The translations under genes were made by a program, and so were the position numbers. A stretch of DNA of 64,000 nt from Pecten maximus. Taxonomy: Eukaryota. Within the stretch, counting starts at the first letter, position 1. The number at the start of each line of letters is the position of its first letter. Of the stretch, positions 27,969 through 39,894 are shown piece after piece. Location: assembly GCF_902652985.1 (NCBI RefSeq), contig NC_047022.1, forward strand, positions 12,772,001-12,836,000. The letters are read 5' to 3'. The notes under the pieces are model-generated. The model did no database searches. It had not been told where the DNA came from and worked only from the letters and a program-made list of their open reading frames with translations.

Positions 27969-29949
27969 CTCTACAGTATTATATTCCCGTAAGGATTATT
28001 TCATTTAGTGAGTTTGTTAGCATTTTATTTCTAAAATGGATGCTTATCATTTTATTAACCAAAGATAATTTAACGTTCCTAGTTTTGATCATGGTTTGAT
28101 CAATATTTTGTCACTAATGCGGTGTCATCCCGCAGTATTTTTACATAAATTATATGAATACATGATGTACTATGTATGAATTTATTGTATATGGATACCC
28201 CCATTGTCAGATTTTGCTTCCCAATATGATATTAAAACTGTTTCAACAATTACGAAAATAAAAGAAGAATCTATTACGTGTTAACACTTGTTTCATTTTA
28301 GGGATAGCTCTTATGTAAAATGTATGAACTGTGAAGTGTTCGTTTGTTGAAAAATTAATCGTATTCCATAAAGTTATATGAATATATTGTGAGAAAAATC
28401 CGCCTGCTGCACCGCATAGATAATGACGGCATTCTAGTATTAAGACATGAATAGACGAAGAAGATTACTTTCCCACATACTTATGTATGGTATACGTGAT
28501 TGGTATATAAATGCATATCATAAGTGTTTTGTAAATCTAATTTATTCAGAACCATAACATGATTTGAGTAAAATAGGAAGGACGTTAATTTTCTCGGGTT
28601 GATTTTTGACTAATAGTTATCGTTACCCGCAAAAATGTAATCCTTGAATTTTGACGTTAAAACGATATTTTTAACACTCGCTACACTATCCCACTACACA
28701 GTATTTTGGTAGGGTCTAAACTCGCTGATACTACATAAACAATAGGACATATAAGTGTTCATTTCTGTGTATAACAAATCACAATAAAACTCGGACTTCG
28801 CCACTTGACAGAGGAAGCAGGCCATCACGTGCTTGTGGTTGTTTGTTTCTGCAAATAGCTATATGGAAGACCTTGCAAAGCCATGTCGCCTGTACACATG
28901 TGAGCGAACTCCGTAATTGTACTTTAGTGTGAGGGTAACCCTTTATCCTTAGTTTTAGATTCTGGGTTATTTTGAAATAGCGTGAAATACACATGTATGT
29001 TGTAAATAAAGATTGTGTTAAATACATGGCTTGGTCTTCTGTCAAGCTCAAAAGGGTCAAAGTTCAATTATTCTATTATTAGAACTTGCAAGTGTACTAA
29101 AGTCGCAATAGTTAGCTTGAATCTGTTAAAACAAAGGAAATTTGAGGAAATGGGTCTCTATTTTAATGTGTAGTGTACAGTGGTGTAGTTTCATCAATGG
29201 GATCCTTGGTCGACATTTGTTTCTGGACAGACAAACAAGTCAATATAAGTTTATTTATTTAATTGTAAAACATAGTTTAGTAAAATACATAAATTTAGGT
29301 AGACATCAATGATAACGCGATTCACGGAACCAAACATGCTATCGAGAGACGCAGATACTTTAAATAAAGACAGTTGTCTAGATTTAATGACAACCATTAT
29401 GGTGTCGTTAGGAGTTGGTCACTTTTTTAAGTTTTAAGTTCATTATTGCACGTTGCCATTTCTTTGTCACTGCTCCGGTTCCCTCTTTTAGAACGTGACA
29501 TGAATTTAATTTTACCTAGACGAATCATATTACCAATGAAGAAGCGCTCATCATTAATGTCCATTTTACTAGGTTTACACTTTTAGCAGCAACATGGTTC
29601 GCTAATGACAAGATACCTCGACGACAATTGACAGACAATAGATATACCTTTACAGTAAGATATATTACGATCTGTAGCGCACACCTAATTTCGGATTCAG
29701 GATTGTACACCCTTTCGAGAATGTTGACAGTATGTTGTACACTACTTAGGCCCGGGAATTCCATCGGGAACTGAGACTGTTCTTACAGTAGTGGACACAC
29801 AATGTTGAGGTACATGTAATCGGAAATATCGGCAATTTCCGTAAACGAGAAAATTACGGAAATTGCCGACATTCCCCGATTGCCTATTGAAGTACATACA
29901 CTGAATATAAAATTGCATGGTATTTACAATAAACACAGCTCATCAATGA

Positions 29950-30129
29950 TCACGCCCAGGGAGGAGGCGCCATCTTCCAATACCAGGCGATAGAAATCGT
30001 TGAGAAACACAACGATACAAATAAAAGAGTCCTTGACCAACCGGACACTTGACCGTTTGTCAAATCTGTTGTAGGTGTTTCTTGTCTCTTATATATTCGT
30101 CTAGCTTTCACATCCGTTACTTCGAGGGT
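29950..30129 (-). CDS. FABP-family protein exon 4 (last beta strands plus C-terminal hydrophobic extension)
   Basis: Acceptor tccttacag|ACC; TLEVTDVKARRIYKR-QETPTTDLTNGQVSGWSR-TLLFVSLCFSTISIAWYW-KMAPPPWA*. Confidence 0.88.
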   Translation of the reverse strand, partial: TLEVTDVKARRIYKRQETPTTDLTNGQVSGWSRTLLFVSLCFSTISIAWYWKMAPPPWA

Positions 30130-30972
30130 CTGTAAGGATAAACAAATCAAATCATTAAATAGACTGATTATCACACGTTATATTGTACAATATCTATTGA
30201 ACTTTTGTAAATAATATCACTCGACATTTTTATTTATATATGTATATAATACTTGCTATGACGTAAAATAAGCAAACGAGAAGTATGCAGCTACAATTTA
30301 TAAATCATTGACTTCCAATTAATAGGTGTGCATGAAAAATCTTTCCTAACAAGGTAATTTACATTGGAAGCATGCGCAATTGATTAGGCTCGGTAAATCT
30401 TTGCTATCAAACAATAATAAATGGTTATAAGTATGTATAGTGTAAACAGAATCACTGGCCTTATCATGTATCACCATTTTCTTCCATCGTTATAGTTAAT
30501 TTTAGCTTTTGTTTTTGCGAACCATAGTTAAGAGTACCACCAATTCATGGGGAGGCTTGTTTATCATTGTTGATTATTGAGTAGAATAAGGTTTGGCGTG
30601 TTTTAGTTTGATTTGGTTTCAATTCTCATATGAAAAAAAATAGAATAATGGGAGCAATTTTTGAATCATGTATCAAAACGTGTAAATAATGGCCATGGGT
30701 AAAATTTATGTTGAGGAAAGACACGAAATGCTTATAGAGCAATTGTAGAGTTTTATCGCTTATGGTACTAATACATATACTTCAGGAATACTTCAGAAGG
30801 ACAAGAGTTAATATTTCATCATTTGTAACATTGAGCCAAAGAAGTGTTGGATCAAATGGACTTTAAATAAAATGCAACACTTTTCAGCAAACAGCTTCAC
30901 AAATATCAATAGATATTGATTTTAATGCATGACTACAAAACTCTGTTGAAATAACTGAACTAAGATACATAC

Positions 30973-31071
30973 CATTATCATCGTCTCCTCGTCAAATTCC
31001 CGGGTTATCTTGGCAAAGGGCGGGTCCAACTGACGCAGGACAAGCCGCCCGTTTTCCAGGATGACCGAAGT
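30973..31071 (-). CDS. FABP-family protein exon 3
   Basis: aacag|ACT...ATG|gtatgt, 99 nt; TSVILENGRLVLRQLDPPFAKITREFDEETMIM, including the TRE motif. Confidence 0.9.
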
Positions 31072-31411
31072 CTGTTAAACATTACAAATATTCCATACTA
31101 GTAAATATGTCTGTGTGTTATTTGTGTTAGATCAGGAGTGGAAAGATAGAATAATAATACCATCAATTTGAGCAGTGTTACATATTAAACAGATTACAAC
31201 ATATTGGTCCATTTCGTCAAGGAGCCTCCTGATTTTAGTGGTAATCTTATTTTAGCGGTTATTTGCGAATGTGCTAAAAGCTTGAATGCGTCACAGTCAG
31301 AACGTTTACAGTACATATTCCGTTAAGCAAAAAAAAAAAAAAAACTTTGAAGAAGAAACGTTAGCATTTTGTGTAACCTTCACCACCCAGATATGTATTA
31401 GATCATCTCAC

Positions 31412-31584
31412 CCGAATCATTCGTCCGTCGAAGGTTGGCCACGTGCAGTCTTGTCCCACGGTCAGTTGAACGTCTGTCTGTTTGACGAAGGAAGACGTTA
31501 ATATAGACCAGCGCCCTCTGGTGACGCAGATTTTCTGGCATGGATAAATTAACGCGCTCAGCCATCTCTTAAAGAAGGGTACAC
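31412..31584 (-). CDS. FABP-family protein exon 2
   Basis: aaag|GT...CGG|gtgaga, 173 nt (a typical FABP exon 2 length); (G)VPFFKRWLSALIYPCQKICVTRGRWSILTSSFVKQTDVQLTVGQDCTWPTFDGRMIR. Confidence 0.9.
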
Positions 31585-31877
31585 CTTTAAACAGAAAAAG
31601 AAAAAAATGTGTTATCTTATGATGTGTGAAGTAAAACTTTTGAAGATATTTGTTTTGTGTATCTCATTATTTAATAGAACTTTAAAATGTGAAGTAGTAC
31701 CTTCCTTAGTATTATGGAAATATTTCCACCTTTTCTCCCATTTCCAAAAAGAACGTAATATCAATTATTCAAATCGGCGGTATCAGGCAATCGATTTTTT
31801 AATACTACTATTAGTCGCTAAGTTAACTGATATCTCTTAATGGAATATGTGTGGTCTACATTCAAACTAAGAAATTC

Positions 31878-34800
31878 TTTATGTATGGTGTGTGGACATA
31901 TTACAGGTATTCACAGGACTAGATGTTTATGTATGGTGTATGGACATATTACAGTATTCACAGAACTAGATGTTTATGTATGGTGTGTGGACATATTACA
32001 GGTATCCACACGACTAGATGTTTATGTATGGTGTGTGGACATATTACAGGTATTCACAGGACTAGATGTTTATGTATGGTGTGTGGACATATTACAGGTA
32101 TTCACAGAACTAGATGTTTATGTATGGCGTGTGGACATATTACAGGTATGCCCAGGACTAGATGTTTATGTATGGTGTGTGGACATATTACAGGTATTTA
32201 CAGGACTAGATGTTTATGTATGGTGTGTGGACATATTACAGGTATTCACAGGACTAGATGTTTATGTATGGTGTGTGGACATATTACAGGTATTCACAGG
32301 ACTAGATGTTTATGTATGGTGTGTGGACATATTACAGGTATTCCTAGGACTAGATGTTTATGTATGATGTGTGGACATATTACAGGTATTGAGAGGACTA
32401 GATGTTTATGTATGGTGTGTGGACATATTACAGGTATTCACAGGACTAGATGTTCATGTATGGTGTATGGACATATTACAGGTATTCAGAGGACTAGATG
32501 TTTATGTATGGTGTGTGGACATATTACAGTATTCACAGAACTAGATTTTTATGTATGGTGTATGGACATATTACAGTATTCACAGAACTAGATGTTTATG
32601 TATGGTGTGTGGACATATTACAGGTATTCACACGACTAGATGTTTATGTATGGTGTGTGGACATATTACAGGTATTCAGAGGACTAGATGTTTATGTATG
32701 GTGTGTGGACATATTACAGGTATTCACAGGACTAGATGTTTATGTATGGTGTGTGGACATATTACAGGTATTCACAGAACTAGATGTTTATGTATGGTGT
32801 GTGGACATATTACAGGTATTCACAGAACTAGATGTTTATGTATGGTGTATGGACATATTACAGGTATTCAGAGGACTAGATGTGTATGTATGGTGTGTGG
32901 ACATATTACAGGTATTCCTAGGACTAGATTTTTATGTATGGTGTGTGGACATATTACAGGTATTCAGAGGACTAGATGTTCATGTATGGTGTGTGGACAT
33001 ATTACAGGTATTCACAGGACTAGATTTTTATGTATGGTGTGTGGACATATTACAGGTATTCAGAGGACTAGATGTTCATGTATGGTGTATGGACATATTA
33101 CAGGTATTCAGAGGACTAGATGTGTATGTATGGTGTGTGGACATATTACAGGTATTCCTAGGACTAGATTTTTATGTATGGTGTGTGGACATATTACAGG
33201 TATTCAGAGGACTAGATGTTCATGTATGGTGTGTGGACATATTACAGGTATTCACAGGACTAGATTTTTATGTATGGTGTGTGGACATATTACAGGTATT
33301 CAGAGGACTAGATGTTCATGTATGGTGTATGGACATATTACAGGTATTCAGAGGACTAGATGTTCATGTATGGTGTATGGACATATTACAGGTATTCACA
33401 GGACAGGATGTTTATGTATGATGTGTGGACATATTACAGGTATTCACACGACTAGATGTTTATGTATAGTGTGTGGACATATTACAGGTATTCAGAGGAC
33501 AGGATGTTTATGTATGATGTGTGGACATATTACAGGTATTCACACGACTAGATGTTTATGTATAGTGTGTGGACATATTACAGGTATTCAGAGGACTAGA
33601 TGTGTATGTATGGTGTGTGGACATATTACAGGTATTCCTAGGACTAGATTTTTATGTATGGTGTGTGGACATATTACAGGTATTCAGAGGACTAGATGTT
33701 CATGTATGGTGTGTGGACATATTACAGATATTCACACGACTAGATGTTCATGTATGGTGTGTGGACATATTACAGGTATTCACAGGACTAGATTTTTATG
33801 TATGGTGTGTGGACATATTACAGGTATTCAGAGGACTAGATGTTCATGTATGGTGTATGGACATATTACAGGTATTCAGAGGACTAGATGTTCATGTATG
33901 GTGTGTGGACATATTACAGGTATTCACAGGACAGGATGTTTATGTATGATGTGTGGACATATTACAGGTATTCACAGGACTAGATGTTTATGTATGGTGT
34001 GTGGACATATTACAGGTATTCACAGGACTAGATGTTTATGTATGGTGTGTGGACATATTACAGGTATTCCTAGGACTAGATGTTTATGTATGATGTGTGG
34101 ACATATTACAGGTATTCAGAGGACTAGATGTTTATGTATGGTGTATGGACATATTACAGGTATTCAGAGGACTAGATGTTCATGTATGGTGTATGGACAT
34201 ATTACAGGTATTCAGAGGACTAGATGTTTATGTATGGTGTGTGGACATATTACAGGTATTCAGAGGACTAGATGTTTATGTATGGTGTATGGACATATTA
34301 CAGGTATTCACAGGACAGGATGTTTATGTATGGTGTGTGGACATATTACAGGTATTCACAGGACTAGATGTTTATGTATGGTGTGTGGACATATTACAGG
34401 TATTCAGAGGACTAGATGTTTATGTATGGTGTGTGGACATATTACAGGTATTCACAGGACTAGATGTTTATGTATGGTGTGTGGACATATTACAGGTATT
34501 CCTAGGACTAGATGTTTATGTATGGTGTGTGGACATATTACAGGTATTCCCAGGACTAGATGTTTATGTATGGTGTGTGGACATATTACAGGTATTCACA
34601 GGACTAGATGTTTATGTATGATGTGTGGACATATTACAGGTATTCCTAGGACAAGATGTTTATGTATGATGTGTGGACATATTACAGGTATTCCTAGGAC
34701 AAGATGTTTATGTGTGGTGTGTGGACATAATACAAGTATTCACAGGACTAGATGTTTATGTATGGTGTATGGACATATTACAGGTATTCACAGGACTAGA

Positions 34801-37800
34801 TGTTTATGTATGGTGTGTGGACATATTACAGGTATTCCTAGGACAAGATGTTTATGTATGGCGTGTGGACATATTACAGGTATTCACAGGACTAGATGTT
34901 TATGTATGGTGTGTGGACATATTACAGGTATTCACAGGACTAGATGTTTATGTATGATGTGTGGACATATTACAGGTATTCCTAGGACAAGATGTTTATG
35001 TGTGGTGTGTGGACATATTACAGGTATTCAGAGGACTAGATGTTCATGTATGGTGTGTGGACATAATACAGGTATTCAGAGGACTAGATGTTTATGTATG
35101 GTGTGTGGACATATTACAGGTATTCAGAAGACTAGATGCTCATGTATGGTGTGTGGACATATTACAGGTATTCACAGGACAAGATGTTTATGTATGGCGT
35201 GTGGACATATTACAGGTATTCACAGGACTAGATGTTTATGTATGGTGTGTGGACATATTACAGGTATTCACAGGACTAGATGCTCATGTATGGTGTGTGG
35301 ACATATTACAGGTATTCAGAAGACTAGATGCTCATGTATGGTGTGTGGACATATTACAGGTATTCACAGGACTAGATGTTTATGTATGGTGTGTGGACAT
35401 ATTACAGGTATTCCTAGGACAAGATGTTTATGTATGGCGTGTGGACATATTACAGGTATTCACAGGACTAGATGTTTATGTATGATGTGTGGACATATTA
35501 CAGGCATTCACAGGACTAGATGCTCATGTATGGTGTATGGACATATTACAGGTATTCACAGGACAAGATGTTTATGTATGGTGTGTGGACATATTACAGG
35601 CATTCACAGGACTAGATGTTTATGTATGGTGTGTGGACATAATTAAGGTATTCACAGAACTAGATGTTTATGTATGGTGTGTGGACATATTACAGGTATT
35701 CCTAGGACAAGATGTTTATGTGTGGTGTGTGGACATAATACAGGTATTCCTAGGACAAGATGTTTATGTATGGTGTGTGGACATATTACAGGTATTCACA
35801 GGACTAGATGTTTATGTATGATGTGTGGACATATTACAGGTATTCCTAGGACAAGATGTTTATGTGTGGTGTGTGGACATAATACAGGTATTCCTAGGAC
35901 AAGATGTTTATGTATGGTGTGTGGACATATTACAGGTATTCACAGGACTAGATGTTTATGTATGATGTGTGGACATATTACAGGTATTCCTAGGACAAGA
36001 TGTTTATGTGTGGTGTGTGGACATAATACAAGTATTCCTAGGACAAGATGTTTATGTATGGTGTGTGGACATATTACAGGTATTCACAGGACTAGATGTT
36101 TATGTATGGTGTGTGGACATAATTAAGGTATTCACAGAACTAGATGTTTATGTATGGTGTGTGGACATATTACAGGTATTCCTAGGACAAGATGTTTATG
36201 TATGGTGTGTGGACATAATACAGGTATTCACAGGACTAGATGTTTATGTATGATGTGTGGACATATTACAGGTATTCAGAGGACTAGATGTTTATGTATG
36301 GTGTGTGGACATATTACAGGTATTCAGAGGACTAGATGTTTATGTATGGTGTGTGGACATATTACAGGTATTCACAGGACTAGATGTTTATGTATGGTGT
36401 GTGGACATATTACAGGTATTCCTAGGACAAGATGTTTATGTATGGCGTGTGGACATATTACAGGTATGCCCAGGACTAGATGTTTATGTATGGTGTGTGG
36501 ACATATTACAGGTATTTACAGGACTAGATGTTTATGTATGGTGTGTGGACATATTACAGGTATTCACAGGACTAGATGTTTATGTATGATGTGTGGACAT
36601 ATTACAGGTATTCCTAGGACAAGATGTTTATGTATGATGTGTGGACATATTACAGGTATTCCTAGGACAAGATGTTTATGTGTGGTGTGTGGACATAATA
36701 CAGGTATTCAGAGGACTAGATGTTGATGTATGGTGTGTGGACATATTACAGGTATTCAGAAGACTAGATGCTCATGTATGGTGTGTGGACATATTACAGG
36801 TATTCACAGGACTAGATGTTTATGTATGGTGTGTGGACATATTACAGGTATTCCTAGGACAAGATGTTTATGTATGGCGTGTGGACATATTACAGGTATT
36901 CACAGGACTAGATGTTTATGTATGATGTGTGGACATATTACAGGCATTCACAGGACTAGATGCTCATGTATGGTGTATGGACATATTACAGGTATTCACA
37001 GGACAAGATGTTTATGTATGGTGTGTGGACATATTACAGGCATTCACAGGACTAGATGTTTATGTATGGTGTGTGGACATAATTAAGGTATTCACAGAAC
37101 TAGATGTTTATGTATGGTGTGTGGACATATTACAGGTATTCCTAGGACAAGATGTTTATGTGTGGTGTGTGGACATAATACAGGTATTCCTAGGACAAGA
37201 TGTTTATGTATGGTGTGTGGACATATTACAGGTATTCACAGGACTAGATGTTTATGTATGATGTGTGGACATATTACAGGTATTCCTAGGACAAGATGTT
37301 TATGTATGATGTGTGGACATATTACAGGTATTCCTAGGACAAGATGTTTATGTGTGGTGTGTGGACATAATACAAGTATTCACAGGACTAGATGTTTATG
37401 TATGGTGTATGGACATAATACAGGTATTCACAGGACTAGATGTTTATGTATGGTGTGTGGACATATTACAGGTATTCCTAGGACAAGATGTTTATGTATG
37501 GCGTGTGGACATATTACAGGTATTCACAGGACTAGATATTTATGTATGGTGTGTGGACATATTACAGGTATTCACAGGACTAGATTTTTATGTATGATGT
37601 GTGGACATATTACAGGTATTCCTAGGACAGGATGTTTATGTGTGGTGTGTGGACATATTACAGGTATTCAGAGGACTAGATGTTCATGTATGGTGTGTGG
37701 ACATAATACAGGTATTCAGAGGACTAGATGTTGATGTATGGTGTGTGGACATATTACAGGTATTCAGAAGACTAGATGCTCATGTATGGTGTGTGGACAT

Positions 37801-38812
37801 ATTACAGGTATTCACAGGACTAGATGTTTATGTATGGTGTGTGGACATATTACAGGTATTCCTAGGACAAGATGTTTATGTATGGCGTGTGGACATATTA
37901 CAGGTATTCACAGGACTAGATGTTTATGTATGATGTGTGGACATATTACAGGCATTCACAGGACTAGATGCTCATGTATGGTGTATGGACATATTACAGG
38001 TATTCACAGGACAAGATGTTTATGTATGGTGTGTGGACATATTACAGGTATTCACAGGACTAGATGTTTATGTATGATGTGTGGACATATTACAGGTATT
38101 CCTAGGACAAGATGTTGATGTATGGTGTGTGGACATAATACAGGTATTCCTAGGACAAGATGTTTATGTATGGTGTGTGGACATATTACAGGTATTCACA
38201 GGACTAGATGTTTATGTATGATGTGTGGACATATTACAGGTATTCCTAGGACAAGATGTTTATGTGTGGTGTGTGGACATAATACAAGTATTCCTAGGAC
38301 AAGATGTTTATGTATGGTGTGTGGACATATTACAGGTATTCACAGGACTAGATGTTTATGTATGGTGTGTGGACATAATTAAGGTATTCACAGAACTAGA
38401 TGTTTATGTATGGTGTGTGGACATATTACAGGTATTCCTAGGACTAGATGTTTATGTATGATGTGTGGACATATTACAGGTATTCCTAGGACAAGATGTT
38501 TATGAATGGTGTGTGGACATATTACAGGTATTCACAGGACTAGATGTTTATGTATGGTGTGTGGACATAATTAAGGTATTCACAGAACTAGATGTTTATG
38601 TATGGTGTGTGGACATATTACAGGTATTCACAGGACTAGATGTTTATGTATGATGTGTGGACATATTACAGGTATTCCTAGGACAAGATGTTTATGTGTG
38701 GTGTGTGGACATAATACAGGTATTCACAGGACTAGATGTTTATGTATGATGTGTGGACATATTACAGGTATTCACAGGACTAGATGTTTATGTATGGTGT
38801 ATCGACATATTA
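31878..38812. repeat. 48-bp tandem array (TATGGTGTGTGGACATATTACAGGTATTCACAGGACTAGATGTTTATG), ~6.9 kb, inside FABP intron 1
   Basis: About 144 units with recurring variant blocks. Confidence 0.98.
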
Positions 38813-39397
38813 ATGGTGTACCATTGGTCGTAAGTTGTTTTAGCTTGACGTTGAATCTGAGACCCCTTCTTTCCAAACTATCGGCCAAATTCGAGGCATC
38901 ATTCATTTGCTGAAGTAGGGAATGTTCATGTTTAACATACTATATGCAGCTTAAGATGCTACACTGCCGTCGGTGCATACATTTCTTGTCACAATAATAC
39001 ATAAATGGCATCCATGTGTTATCAATATCAACAAATCAGAAAATTGAGTCCTAGCCCTAATGGCTAACAAAAAGCTACATGCAAAATCTAGATGATGAAC
39101 GCGATAGAAGGCAAGTAAGTTTTCACTCAAAAAAGATTTAAAAGATAAAAATAATCAAAAACATTTGAAGTATGGTTAAAGCGTTAACTACGTAGTTTTG
39201 TTGTATTCTCTAAAATGTGTAACGGCCTAATCTCGTTTTAAATCTATCATATTATATGTATCTGTCGGAGATGAAGCCACTTCCAATGATTCATAATTCG
39301 ACCTGAATTTTATTTTAACGTTTATTATAATGTATCCCGAATGATCTAAATGTATGTTAAAACCTATTTATAACAGGACTGGTGTCGATATACTTAC

Positions 39398-39479
39398 CTA
39401 AACATTTGCAATACTGTTCGAAATTTTCCGACCGGACAAGTTTCCATGTTCCGCCTGCAATGTGTCCCGTTTCCTCCAT
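39398..39479 (-). CDS. FABP-family protein exon 1
   Basis: MEETGHIAGGTWKLVRSENFEQYCKCL(G)|gtaagt, with the GxWxLxxSENF signature; in-frame TGA two codons upstream of the ATG; joined CDS 534 nt = 177 aa. Confidence 0.92.
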
Positions 39480-39894
39480 GAATCAGTAGTTATGTCCTGA
39501 CTCAGCGATGGAGAGTAGCTTGTTCAAGTTTCCTCGCCGATGTCCTGGTATTTAATAGGCCAAATCAGAGGGGTAATAAGTTTCGGTATCCGGTTTGGGA
39601 GAGGATATCGATACTACTGTGCGGTTATACAGCAGTGAGTGTAATATGATGGTTGTACTACTTTCATGTATGAAAGGTCGTTAATGTCCTAAAAATGGTT
39701 CTTTCAAGGTAACTGCAAACGTCAAATAAACTACTTCTTTATGTAGGCTTGGTATATATGGCAATACCCTTGTCTCACTCTACTGGGTCTATTCTACTGA
39801 GGAAATCCTCGGTTTAGTTTTAATGGCTTGTGTTCGTTATGCAAGCTATATATATTCATATACTAACAGTAGGTAACTGGTAACTTGAAACTTG

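Follow-up and report, generated by a model that had tools for sequence, protein, structure and literature searches.

A scallop fatty acid-binding protein with a conserved hydrophobic C-terminal helix as putative tail anchor

Results

The stretch of DNA analysed here, referred to as the window, comprises 64,000 nucleotides of the genome of the king scallop Pecten maximus (RefSeq assembly GCF_902652985.1, contig NC_047022.1, positions 12,772,001 to 12,836,000 of the forward strand) and contains on its minus strand a gene for a fatty acid-binding protein (FABP) of 177 residues, in which a complete lipid-binding barrel is followed by a polar linker and a hydrophobic helix close to the C-terminus. 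By homology and fold the protein is a member of the FABP or intracellular lipid-binding protein (iLBP) family with an atypical architecture, as its length departs from the family trait of a soluble protein of ~130-135 residues that ends after the last strand. We regard it as practically certain that the FABP gene is real and expressed and that its hydrophobic C-terminal helix is conserved. Judged from its sequence, the helix is probably a tail anchor, which would keep the barrel at the cytosolic side of an endomembrane.

All positions are counted from the first letter of the window. An initial annotation, made from the letters alone, had proposed four phase-consistent minus-strand exons encoding a protein of 177 amino acids, and this model was confirmed when the exons were read and translated one by one. 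The coding part of exon 1 (39398..39479, 82 nt) comprises residues 1-27 and the first base of Gly28, whose codon GGT is split between exons 1 and 2, and contains the motif GTWKLVRSENF. Exon 2 (31412..31584, 173 nt) encodes residues 28-85 with the second lid helix, strands B-D and the DGR turn, and exon 3 (30973..31071, 99 nt) encodes residues 86-118 with the TRE motif, to which Arg109 belongs. The coding sequence (CDS) of exon 4 (29950..30129, 180 nt including the stop codon) can be divided into the end of the barrel (30085..30129, residues 119-133, TLEVTDVKARRIYKR) with the last two strands, Arg129 and Tyr131; the polar linker (30040..30084, residues 134-148), which is variable among orthologs and predicted to be disordered; the hydrophobic helix and putative tail anchor (29974..30039, residues 149-170), made up of WSR, a core of 18 residues and a lysine; and the C-terminal end (29950..29973) with residues 171-177, MAPPPWA, and the TGA stop. 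The motifs on which the family assignment had been based (GTWKLVRSENF, DGR, TRE and RIYKR) were all found in the exon translations, and so were the 44 residues described beyond RIYKR, with the hydrophobic stretch TLLFVSLCFSTISIAWYW between an arginine and a lysine and MAPPPWA thereafter.

Every intron is of the GT-AG type, with the donors GTAAGT, GTGAGA and GTATGT and a pyrimidine tract preceding the AG at all acceptors, and the intron phases are 1, 0, 0. Vertebrate FABP genes likewise have four exons, an exon 2 of 173 nt and the phases 1, 0, 0. The start codon lies at 39479 and is preceded two codons upstream by an in-frame TGA (39483-39485). The exon translations are identical throughout to the matching segments of a 177-residue Pecten maximus protein in RefSeq (record P0005), named ‘sodium/calcium exchanger regulatory protein 1-like’, and do not stem from a chance open reading frame (ORF). 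The gene model is therefore already public under a generic FABP-family name, and its architecture appears to have gone unremarked.

Sequence shared with positions 29700-31700 was found in 20 public runs from 10 studies at word shares of 0.19-0.34, which fit the expectation for the exons and the 3' untranslated region (3'UTR) alone. Four runs were aligned to positions 28000-31800; X1, X3 and X8 represent three studies, with X8 declared as an RNA-seq library, and run X17 is low-depth DNA from organism B with exon 4 outside its coverage. The contigs of X1, X3 and X8 lack 30130-30972 and 31072-31411, segments that are bounded by GT..AG on the strand of the gene, and in this way the predicted junctions 30129|30973 and 31071|31412 were verified as spliced. 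The X8 contig, in addition, extends 90 letters past exon 2 (loose end 31586), and since the first 30 of these match the end of exon 1, each of the three junctions has been observed.

Downstream of 30129, the three transcript contigs are colinear with the genome down to 29315-29377. The transcripts thus run unspliced through the tail codons and the stop, as the proposed extension of exon 4 demands, and then through a 3'UTR of ~600 nt (29315..29949) that is continuous with the CDS. A hidden splice donor in exon 4 that would remove the tail was rejected on the basis of the same colinearity. Among the runs, no variant occurs in the 180 nt of the exon 4 CDS, as opposed to three single-nucleotide polymorphisms and a 16-nt indel in the 3'UTR, which weakly supports a coding tail. 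Two peculiarities of the contigs concern other parts of the gene. X8 carries AA>GG at 31488-31489, which converts Phe60 in barrel strand C to Pro; since this site is variable among the orthologs (F, L, P or R, with Pro in Mizuhopecten), the replacement represents ordinary variation and is probably a natural allele. In the X1 contig introns 2 and 3 are removed, yet it reads 117 nt into intron 1 (31585-31701). As intron 1 has an in-frame stop immediately before exon 2, this form would not lengthen the protein; it is probably partly processed RNA, and it may also reflect an alternative start inside intron 1.

A profile of five sequences matched 242 FABP-family chains in the PDB at E<=0.01, with the squid protein ReP1-NCXSQ (3PPT, E 3.5e-29, 36-37% identity) as the best match, followed by FABP9/4/7/3, and all matches were confined to profile positions 8-135. 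In Pfam, PF00061 was matched by four of the five orthologous sequences (best E 1.4e-7); the Pecten sequence alone scored 18 bits, which is under the gathering cut-off of 23 bits, and the individual exons gave no Pfam match because they are too short. AlphaFold2 predicted ten strands and the lid helices 20-26 and 31-37, with strand A starting at residue 10 and the barrel spanning residues 10-134. The predicted local distance difference test score (pLDDT), averaged over blocks of 10 residues, is ~81-94 for residues 11-130. In Foldseek, the model aligned best with 3PPT, with a template modelling (TM) score of 0.92 and a root-mean-square deviation of 1.2 Å over 128 residues, and then with FABP3/4/5/7/9 and myelin P2, the TM scores by target ranging from 0.88 to 0.93 for solved FABPs. 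A search of the ESM Atlas again returned the FABP family, with the alignment covering residues 1-135 only.

The carboxylate triad, consisting of Arg109 in strand H and Arg129 and Tyr131 in strand J, is invariant in all orthologs and aligns with the S-R-E and T-R-I-Y motifs of 3PPT, in which Tyr131 corresponds to the Tyr128 that is mutated in 3PP6 (Y128F). The profile matches, the fold and the invariant triad together identify a bona fide FABP barrel, so that the family assignment made from the letters is solid, and the conserved residues suggest that the barrel is probably ligand-competent.

Relatives of the tail were sought with exon 4 in an exhaustive phmmer search of 1.84 billion representative proteins, which returned one true relative, a protein of 158 amino acids from Argopecten irradians. 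The other three matches were unrelated low-complexity or repeat proteins and were discarded. Tail-bearing orthologs are present in Ylistrum balloti and Mizuhopecten yessoensis (168 amino acids each) as well as in Argopecten and Pecten, and the Argopecten tail is found both in the RefSeq model and in an independent Logan transcript assembly of 169 amino acids with a complete N-terminus. In RefSeq, the orthologs are named ‘sodium/calcium exchanger regulatory protein 1-like’ or ‘fatty acid-binding protein, adipocyte-like’. An end right after RIYKR in orthologs or transcripts, which would have spoken against the extended protein, was not seen, as the four scallop genera and the transcripts keep the tail. 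The reading frame remains open for 36-44 codons past the K/R after R-I-Y in the four genera, all indels are in frame, and the tails have a common layout of a variable polar linker, W-S-(R/G), an 18-residue hydrophobic core and 1-8 final residues.

The pairwise identity of the orthologs is 0.68 in the barrel, where windows of 22 residues range from 0.55 to 0.77, and 0.63 in the helix (residues 149-170), which is on par with the barrel. In the linker it falls to 0.37 (0.23 counting gaps) and in the C-terminal end to 0.11. A helix that is conserved between a drifting linker and a drifting end indicates selection on a translated, functional helix, and this pattern fits neither a recent stop loss nor untranslated sequence. 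The invariant residues of the helix include Ser150, Leu154, Cys159, Ser161, Ser164, Ala166 and Tyr168, and Ser157 is shared by three of the four species. Ser150/Ser157/Ser164 and Leu154/Ser161/Tyr168 follow each other in heptad spacing, an arrangement that hints at specific helix packing.

Outside the scallops, no homolog of the tail was detected in the exhaustive exon 4 search or in two word-indexed searches with an ortholog and the profile; the latter returned four scallop clusters and distant FABPs of <=32% identity, which have no hydrophobic tail. Within the Pecten genome, no close paralog of the tail (searched with exon 4) or of the barrel (searched with exon 2) was found. PF00061 gave lipocalin-type matches elsewhere in this genome and did not return the tailed FABP gene, and PF14651 gave no match, with the controls equally silent. 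Two FABP-like matches to exon 2 were recorded in the Pecten genome, at G000:C8:34791478-34791669 (L031) and G000:C11:16218710-16218919 (L030/L032). The former has a canonical last exon and belongs to a canonical FABP paralog that lies on the chromosome of the tailed gene at a distance of 22 Mb and ends three residues after R-x-F-K-R.

The 18-residue core of the four orthologs has a grand average of hydropathy (GRAVY) of 1.34-2.14, a mean Eisenberg hydrophobicity <H> of 0.58-0.72 and a mean hydrophobic moment <muH> of 0.06-0.15, and the low moment means that the core is hydrophobic all round and non-amphipathic. In the rest of the protein, the best hydrophobic window of the orthologs reaches an <H> of 0.28-0.38. 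In each of the four orthologs the core is followed by 1-8 final residues, and in the AlphaFold2 model a disordered stretch beyond residue 135 is followed by a low-confidence helix at residues 149-171. The earlier statement that the protein lacks a signal peptide was borne out by a polar N-terminus that leads straight into strand A and by the in-frame stop two codons upstream of the start. Without a signal peptide, and with its only hydrophobic segment at the C-terminus, the protein has the layout of a tail-anchored protein. For the transmembrane helix itself, the outcome is mixed: the predicted helix with its hydrophobic core stands, whereas in Pecten and Argopecten the hydrophobicity is only moderate.

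Intron 1 (31585..39397) has a length of 7.8 kb because of a minisatellite with a 48-bp unit at 31878-38812 (~144.5 copies, 92% match), which fills most of it. The long ORFs on the plus strand (up to 1031 amino acids) arise from this repeat and are artefactual. The minisatellite also has a strong GC skew of about +0.43. A second tandem array at 27000-27663 consists of 13 copies of 51 bp with 96% match and contains repeat ORFs on both strands (441 and 351 amino acids).

MESH1/HDDC3 is a metazoan phosphatase of guanosine tetraphosphate (ppGpp) and NADPH. An ORF on the plus strand at 25629-25913 matches its C-terminal half (human 5VXA/3NR1, E 6e-37, residues 86-179) and has no Pfam match at E<=0.01; it is probably the last exon of a neighbouring gene that converges on the FABP gene. 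Transcript contigs are also present at 28000-28277, with a word-depth figure of 85.5 in X1, and may represent the 3'UTR of this neighbour.

Discussion

The interpretation as a tail-anchored FABP, first put forward in the initial annotation, is supported as far as computation goes, and from the layout of the protein we infer its topology and a location at the endoplasmic reticulum (ER) or the mitochondria. In mammalian cells, the destination of tail-anchored proteins is set by the hydrophobicity of the transmembrane domain (TMD) and the charge after it: a high positive charge directs them to peroxisomes, lower hydrophobicity together with some charge to mitochondria, and a low charge with a hydrophobic TMD, or the lack of any tail, to the ER (PMC5450235). 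The net charge after the scallop helix is 0 in Ylistrum and Mizuhopecten (GRAVY 2.1), +1 in Pecten (1.53) and +2 in Argopecten (1.34). The low charge and the hydrophobicity speak for the ER and, in second place, for the mitochondrial outer membrane, and make peroxisomes unlikely. By analogy with the mammalian proteins, the ER is tentatively proposed as the anchoring membrane.

Several observations weigh against a membrane anchor or its placement. The hydrophobicity of the core is marginal in Pecten and Argopecten, with the GRAVY values given above, a simple Hessa-scale sum amounts to about +1 to +1.8 kcal/mol for the cores of these two species, and the core has just 18 residues and is rich in Ser/Thr. 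The pLDDT of the AlphaFold2 helix is 39-50; values this low are common for an isolated membrane helix, but they are not positive evidence of one. Furthermore, a helix of this degree of conservation could be a soluble protein-binding element instead, and the targeting rules, which come from mammalian and yeast cells, are extrapolated across phyla to the scallop.

One alternative is an otherwise soluble FABP whose helix does not span a membrane and serves in protein-protein interaction or oligomerisation, or in monotopic or lipid-droplet association. The identity of 0.63 in the helix matches that of the folded domain and exceeds what generic anchoring needs, the conserved residues lie on defined faces with heptad spacing, and the hydrophobicity is marginal in two species. 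However, as the helix is non-amphipathic (<muH> 0.06-0.15), it would be poorly water-soluble alone, and the order of its parts, in which a basic residue precedes the 18-residue core and very little sequence follows it, is that of a tail anchor. The conservation also fits an anchor that binds a partner, and Ser-rich conserved faces are typical of helix-helix packing within membranes. We consider this alternative unlikely.

It is very improbable that the tail is a tolerated stop-loss extension without positive function, in which the hydrophobic end would perhaps act mainly as a degradation signal that lowers protein levels. The tail and the normal FABP end do share one exon, and the T content of the tail, 30%, resembles that of the 3'UTR (32%) more than that of exons 1-3 (23%), as expected for a translated former UTR; the family is also fairly fast-evolving, with 68% identity of the barrel within one bivalve family. 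Against this, the frame is open for 36-44 codons in four genera with every indel in frame, and the identity of 63% in the helix versus 37% in the linker and 11% at the end speaks for selection and not for neutrality.

The C-terminal segment could, with hardly any probability, be a glycosylphosphatidylinositol (GPI) attachment signal on a secreted FABP, a signal that cleavage would remove in exchange for a lipid anchor. The small residues (Ser, Gly), the short spacer and the hydrophobic C-terminus are superficially GPI-like. GPI addition, however, needs entry into the ER lumen, and the protein has an ordinary FABP start with strand A at residue 10, an in-frame stop that precedes the ATG by two codons, no hydrophobic N-terminal window and no signal peptide, so that this reading was rejected. 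An annotation or assembly artefact or a pseudogene, with a true protein that ends near residue 133, might be suspected from the 117 nt of intron 1 in X1, which make some transcripts unproductive, and from the Pfam score of the Pecten protein alone (18 versus 23 bits), but is effectively refuted by transcript contigs from three studies that match the genome exactly over the tail-coding DNA without variant or splice, by the assemblies of three other species that independently encode the tail, and by intact frames and a confidently predicted fold.

Among known proteins, the closest match in sequence and structure to the scallop FABP is ReP1-NCXSQ (3PPT, 3PP6), the FABP-family regulator of the Na+/Ca2+ exchanger in squid nerve, with which it shares the barrel, the Arg/Arg-x-Tyr triad and the RIYKR end. 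ReP1-NCXSQ is a mollusc protein with a described activity at a membrane, and its binding to anionic lipid membranes is reported to be electrostatic (PMC5843346). In contrast to the scallop protein, which adds the linker and the hydrophobic helix, ReP1-NCXSQ is soluble, has 131-133 residues and stops two residues past RIYKR. It is the source of the name given to the scallop protein in RefSeq, and this link is one of best-match similarity at 36-37% identity that does not imply regulation of the exchanger. FABP3/4/5/7/9, myelin P2 and CRABP1/2 have the fold, the helix-turn-helix lid, the GxW start and the ligand triad in common with the scallop protein; unlike it, the solved FABPs and CRABPs end at about profile position 133-135 and have no C-terminal hydrophobic segment.

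The nearest functional analogues are ACBD5 and ACBD4, tail-anchored acyl-CoA binders of peroxisomes, where a small lipid-binding domain that elsewhere occurs free in the cytosol is joined by a linker to a C-terminal tail anchor. The tail of ACBD5 has a charge of +4.9 and targets peroxisomes (PMC5450235), compared with a charge of 0 to +2 for the scallop tails, and the ACB domain is a four-helix domain and not a beta-barrel, so that the resemblance is one of analogy and not of homology. Tephritid flies have proteins named ‘myelin P2 / NCX regulatory protein 1-like’ (P0010-P0013), in which an FABP barrel is followed by 25-50 C-terminal residues. These extensions are highly charged, rich in Glu/Lys and coiled-coil-like, lack hydrophobic character and show no sequence relationship to the scallop tail; they apparently represent a different, independent way of lengthening an FABP. 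No account of a tail-anchored or transmembrane FABP came to light in full-text literature searches, and the novelty suspected from the outset holds as far as these searches reach.

The proposed mechanism starts from a barrel with an intact carboxylate triad, a flexible polar linker of 6-14 residues and one moderately hydrophobic C-terminal helix. As the protein has no signal peptide and its hydrophobic segment lies at the extreme C-terminus, it would be synthesised in the cytosol and then inserted post-translationally as a tail-anchored protein whose barrel faces the cytosol. The barrel would be kept within a few nanometres of one membrane rather than diffusing, and could there take up or hand over fatty acids or another carboxylate lipid locally or, alternatively, act as a regulatory subunit loaded with lipid. 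The analysis shows the gene model, its transcription, the FABP fold, the conservation of the triad and of the tail, and the hydrophobicity of the tail; what we infer is insertion into the membrane, topology, organelle, ligand and physiological role. A more specific version, which we hold to be rather doubtful, is suggested by the residues conserved in the helix: the Ser/Tyr face, Cys159 and Ala166 might bind a particular membrane protein, for instance a transporter or an enzyme of acyl lipids, and the FABP docked there would be a permanently tethered, lipid-sensing regulatory subunit. If this were true, the protein would be a hard-wired version of the transient action of the soluble ReP1-NCXSQ at the Na+/Ca2+ exchanger, and a functional transmembrane segment born from a translated 3'UTR would be documented.

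With regard to its origin, the tail shares an exon with the normal FABP end, and the canonical paralog, like the solved FABPs, stops soon after this point. The simplest and most likely history is a loss of the ancestral stop, with translation into the former 3'UTR, before the four sampled scallop genera split.

Conclusion

FABPs and other iLBPs are textbook examples of soluble, diffusible carriers of fatty acids and retinoids, and how they exchange cargo with membranes, be it through collision or diffusion, is a question that has been addressed in artificial systems for decades. The membrane aspects of the scallop protein are predicted and the tail is, as far as seen, confined to scallops. If the tail-anchor interpretation is true, a membrane-fixed FABP kept across a whole bivalve family would be a natural experiment on this cargo exchange, in which the barrel works, or has gained a new job, while held at one membrane. 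The protein would also be a parallel to ACBD4 and ACBD5 and a ready-made design for tethered lipid sensors, and its tail is a candidate for a functional membrane anchor created by the loss of a stop codon into the 3'UTR.

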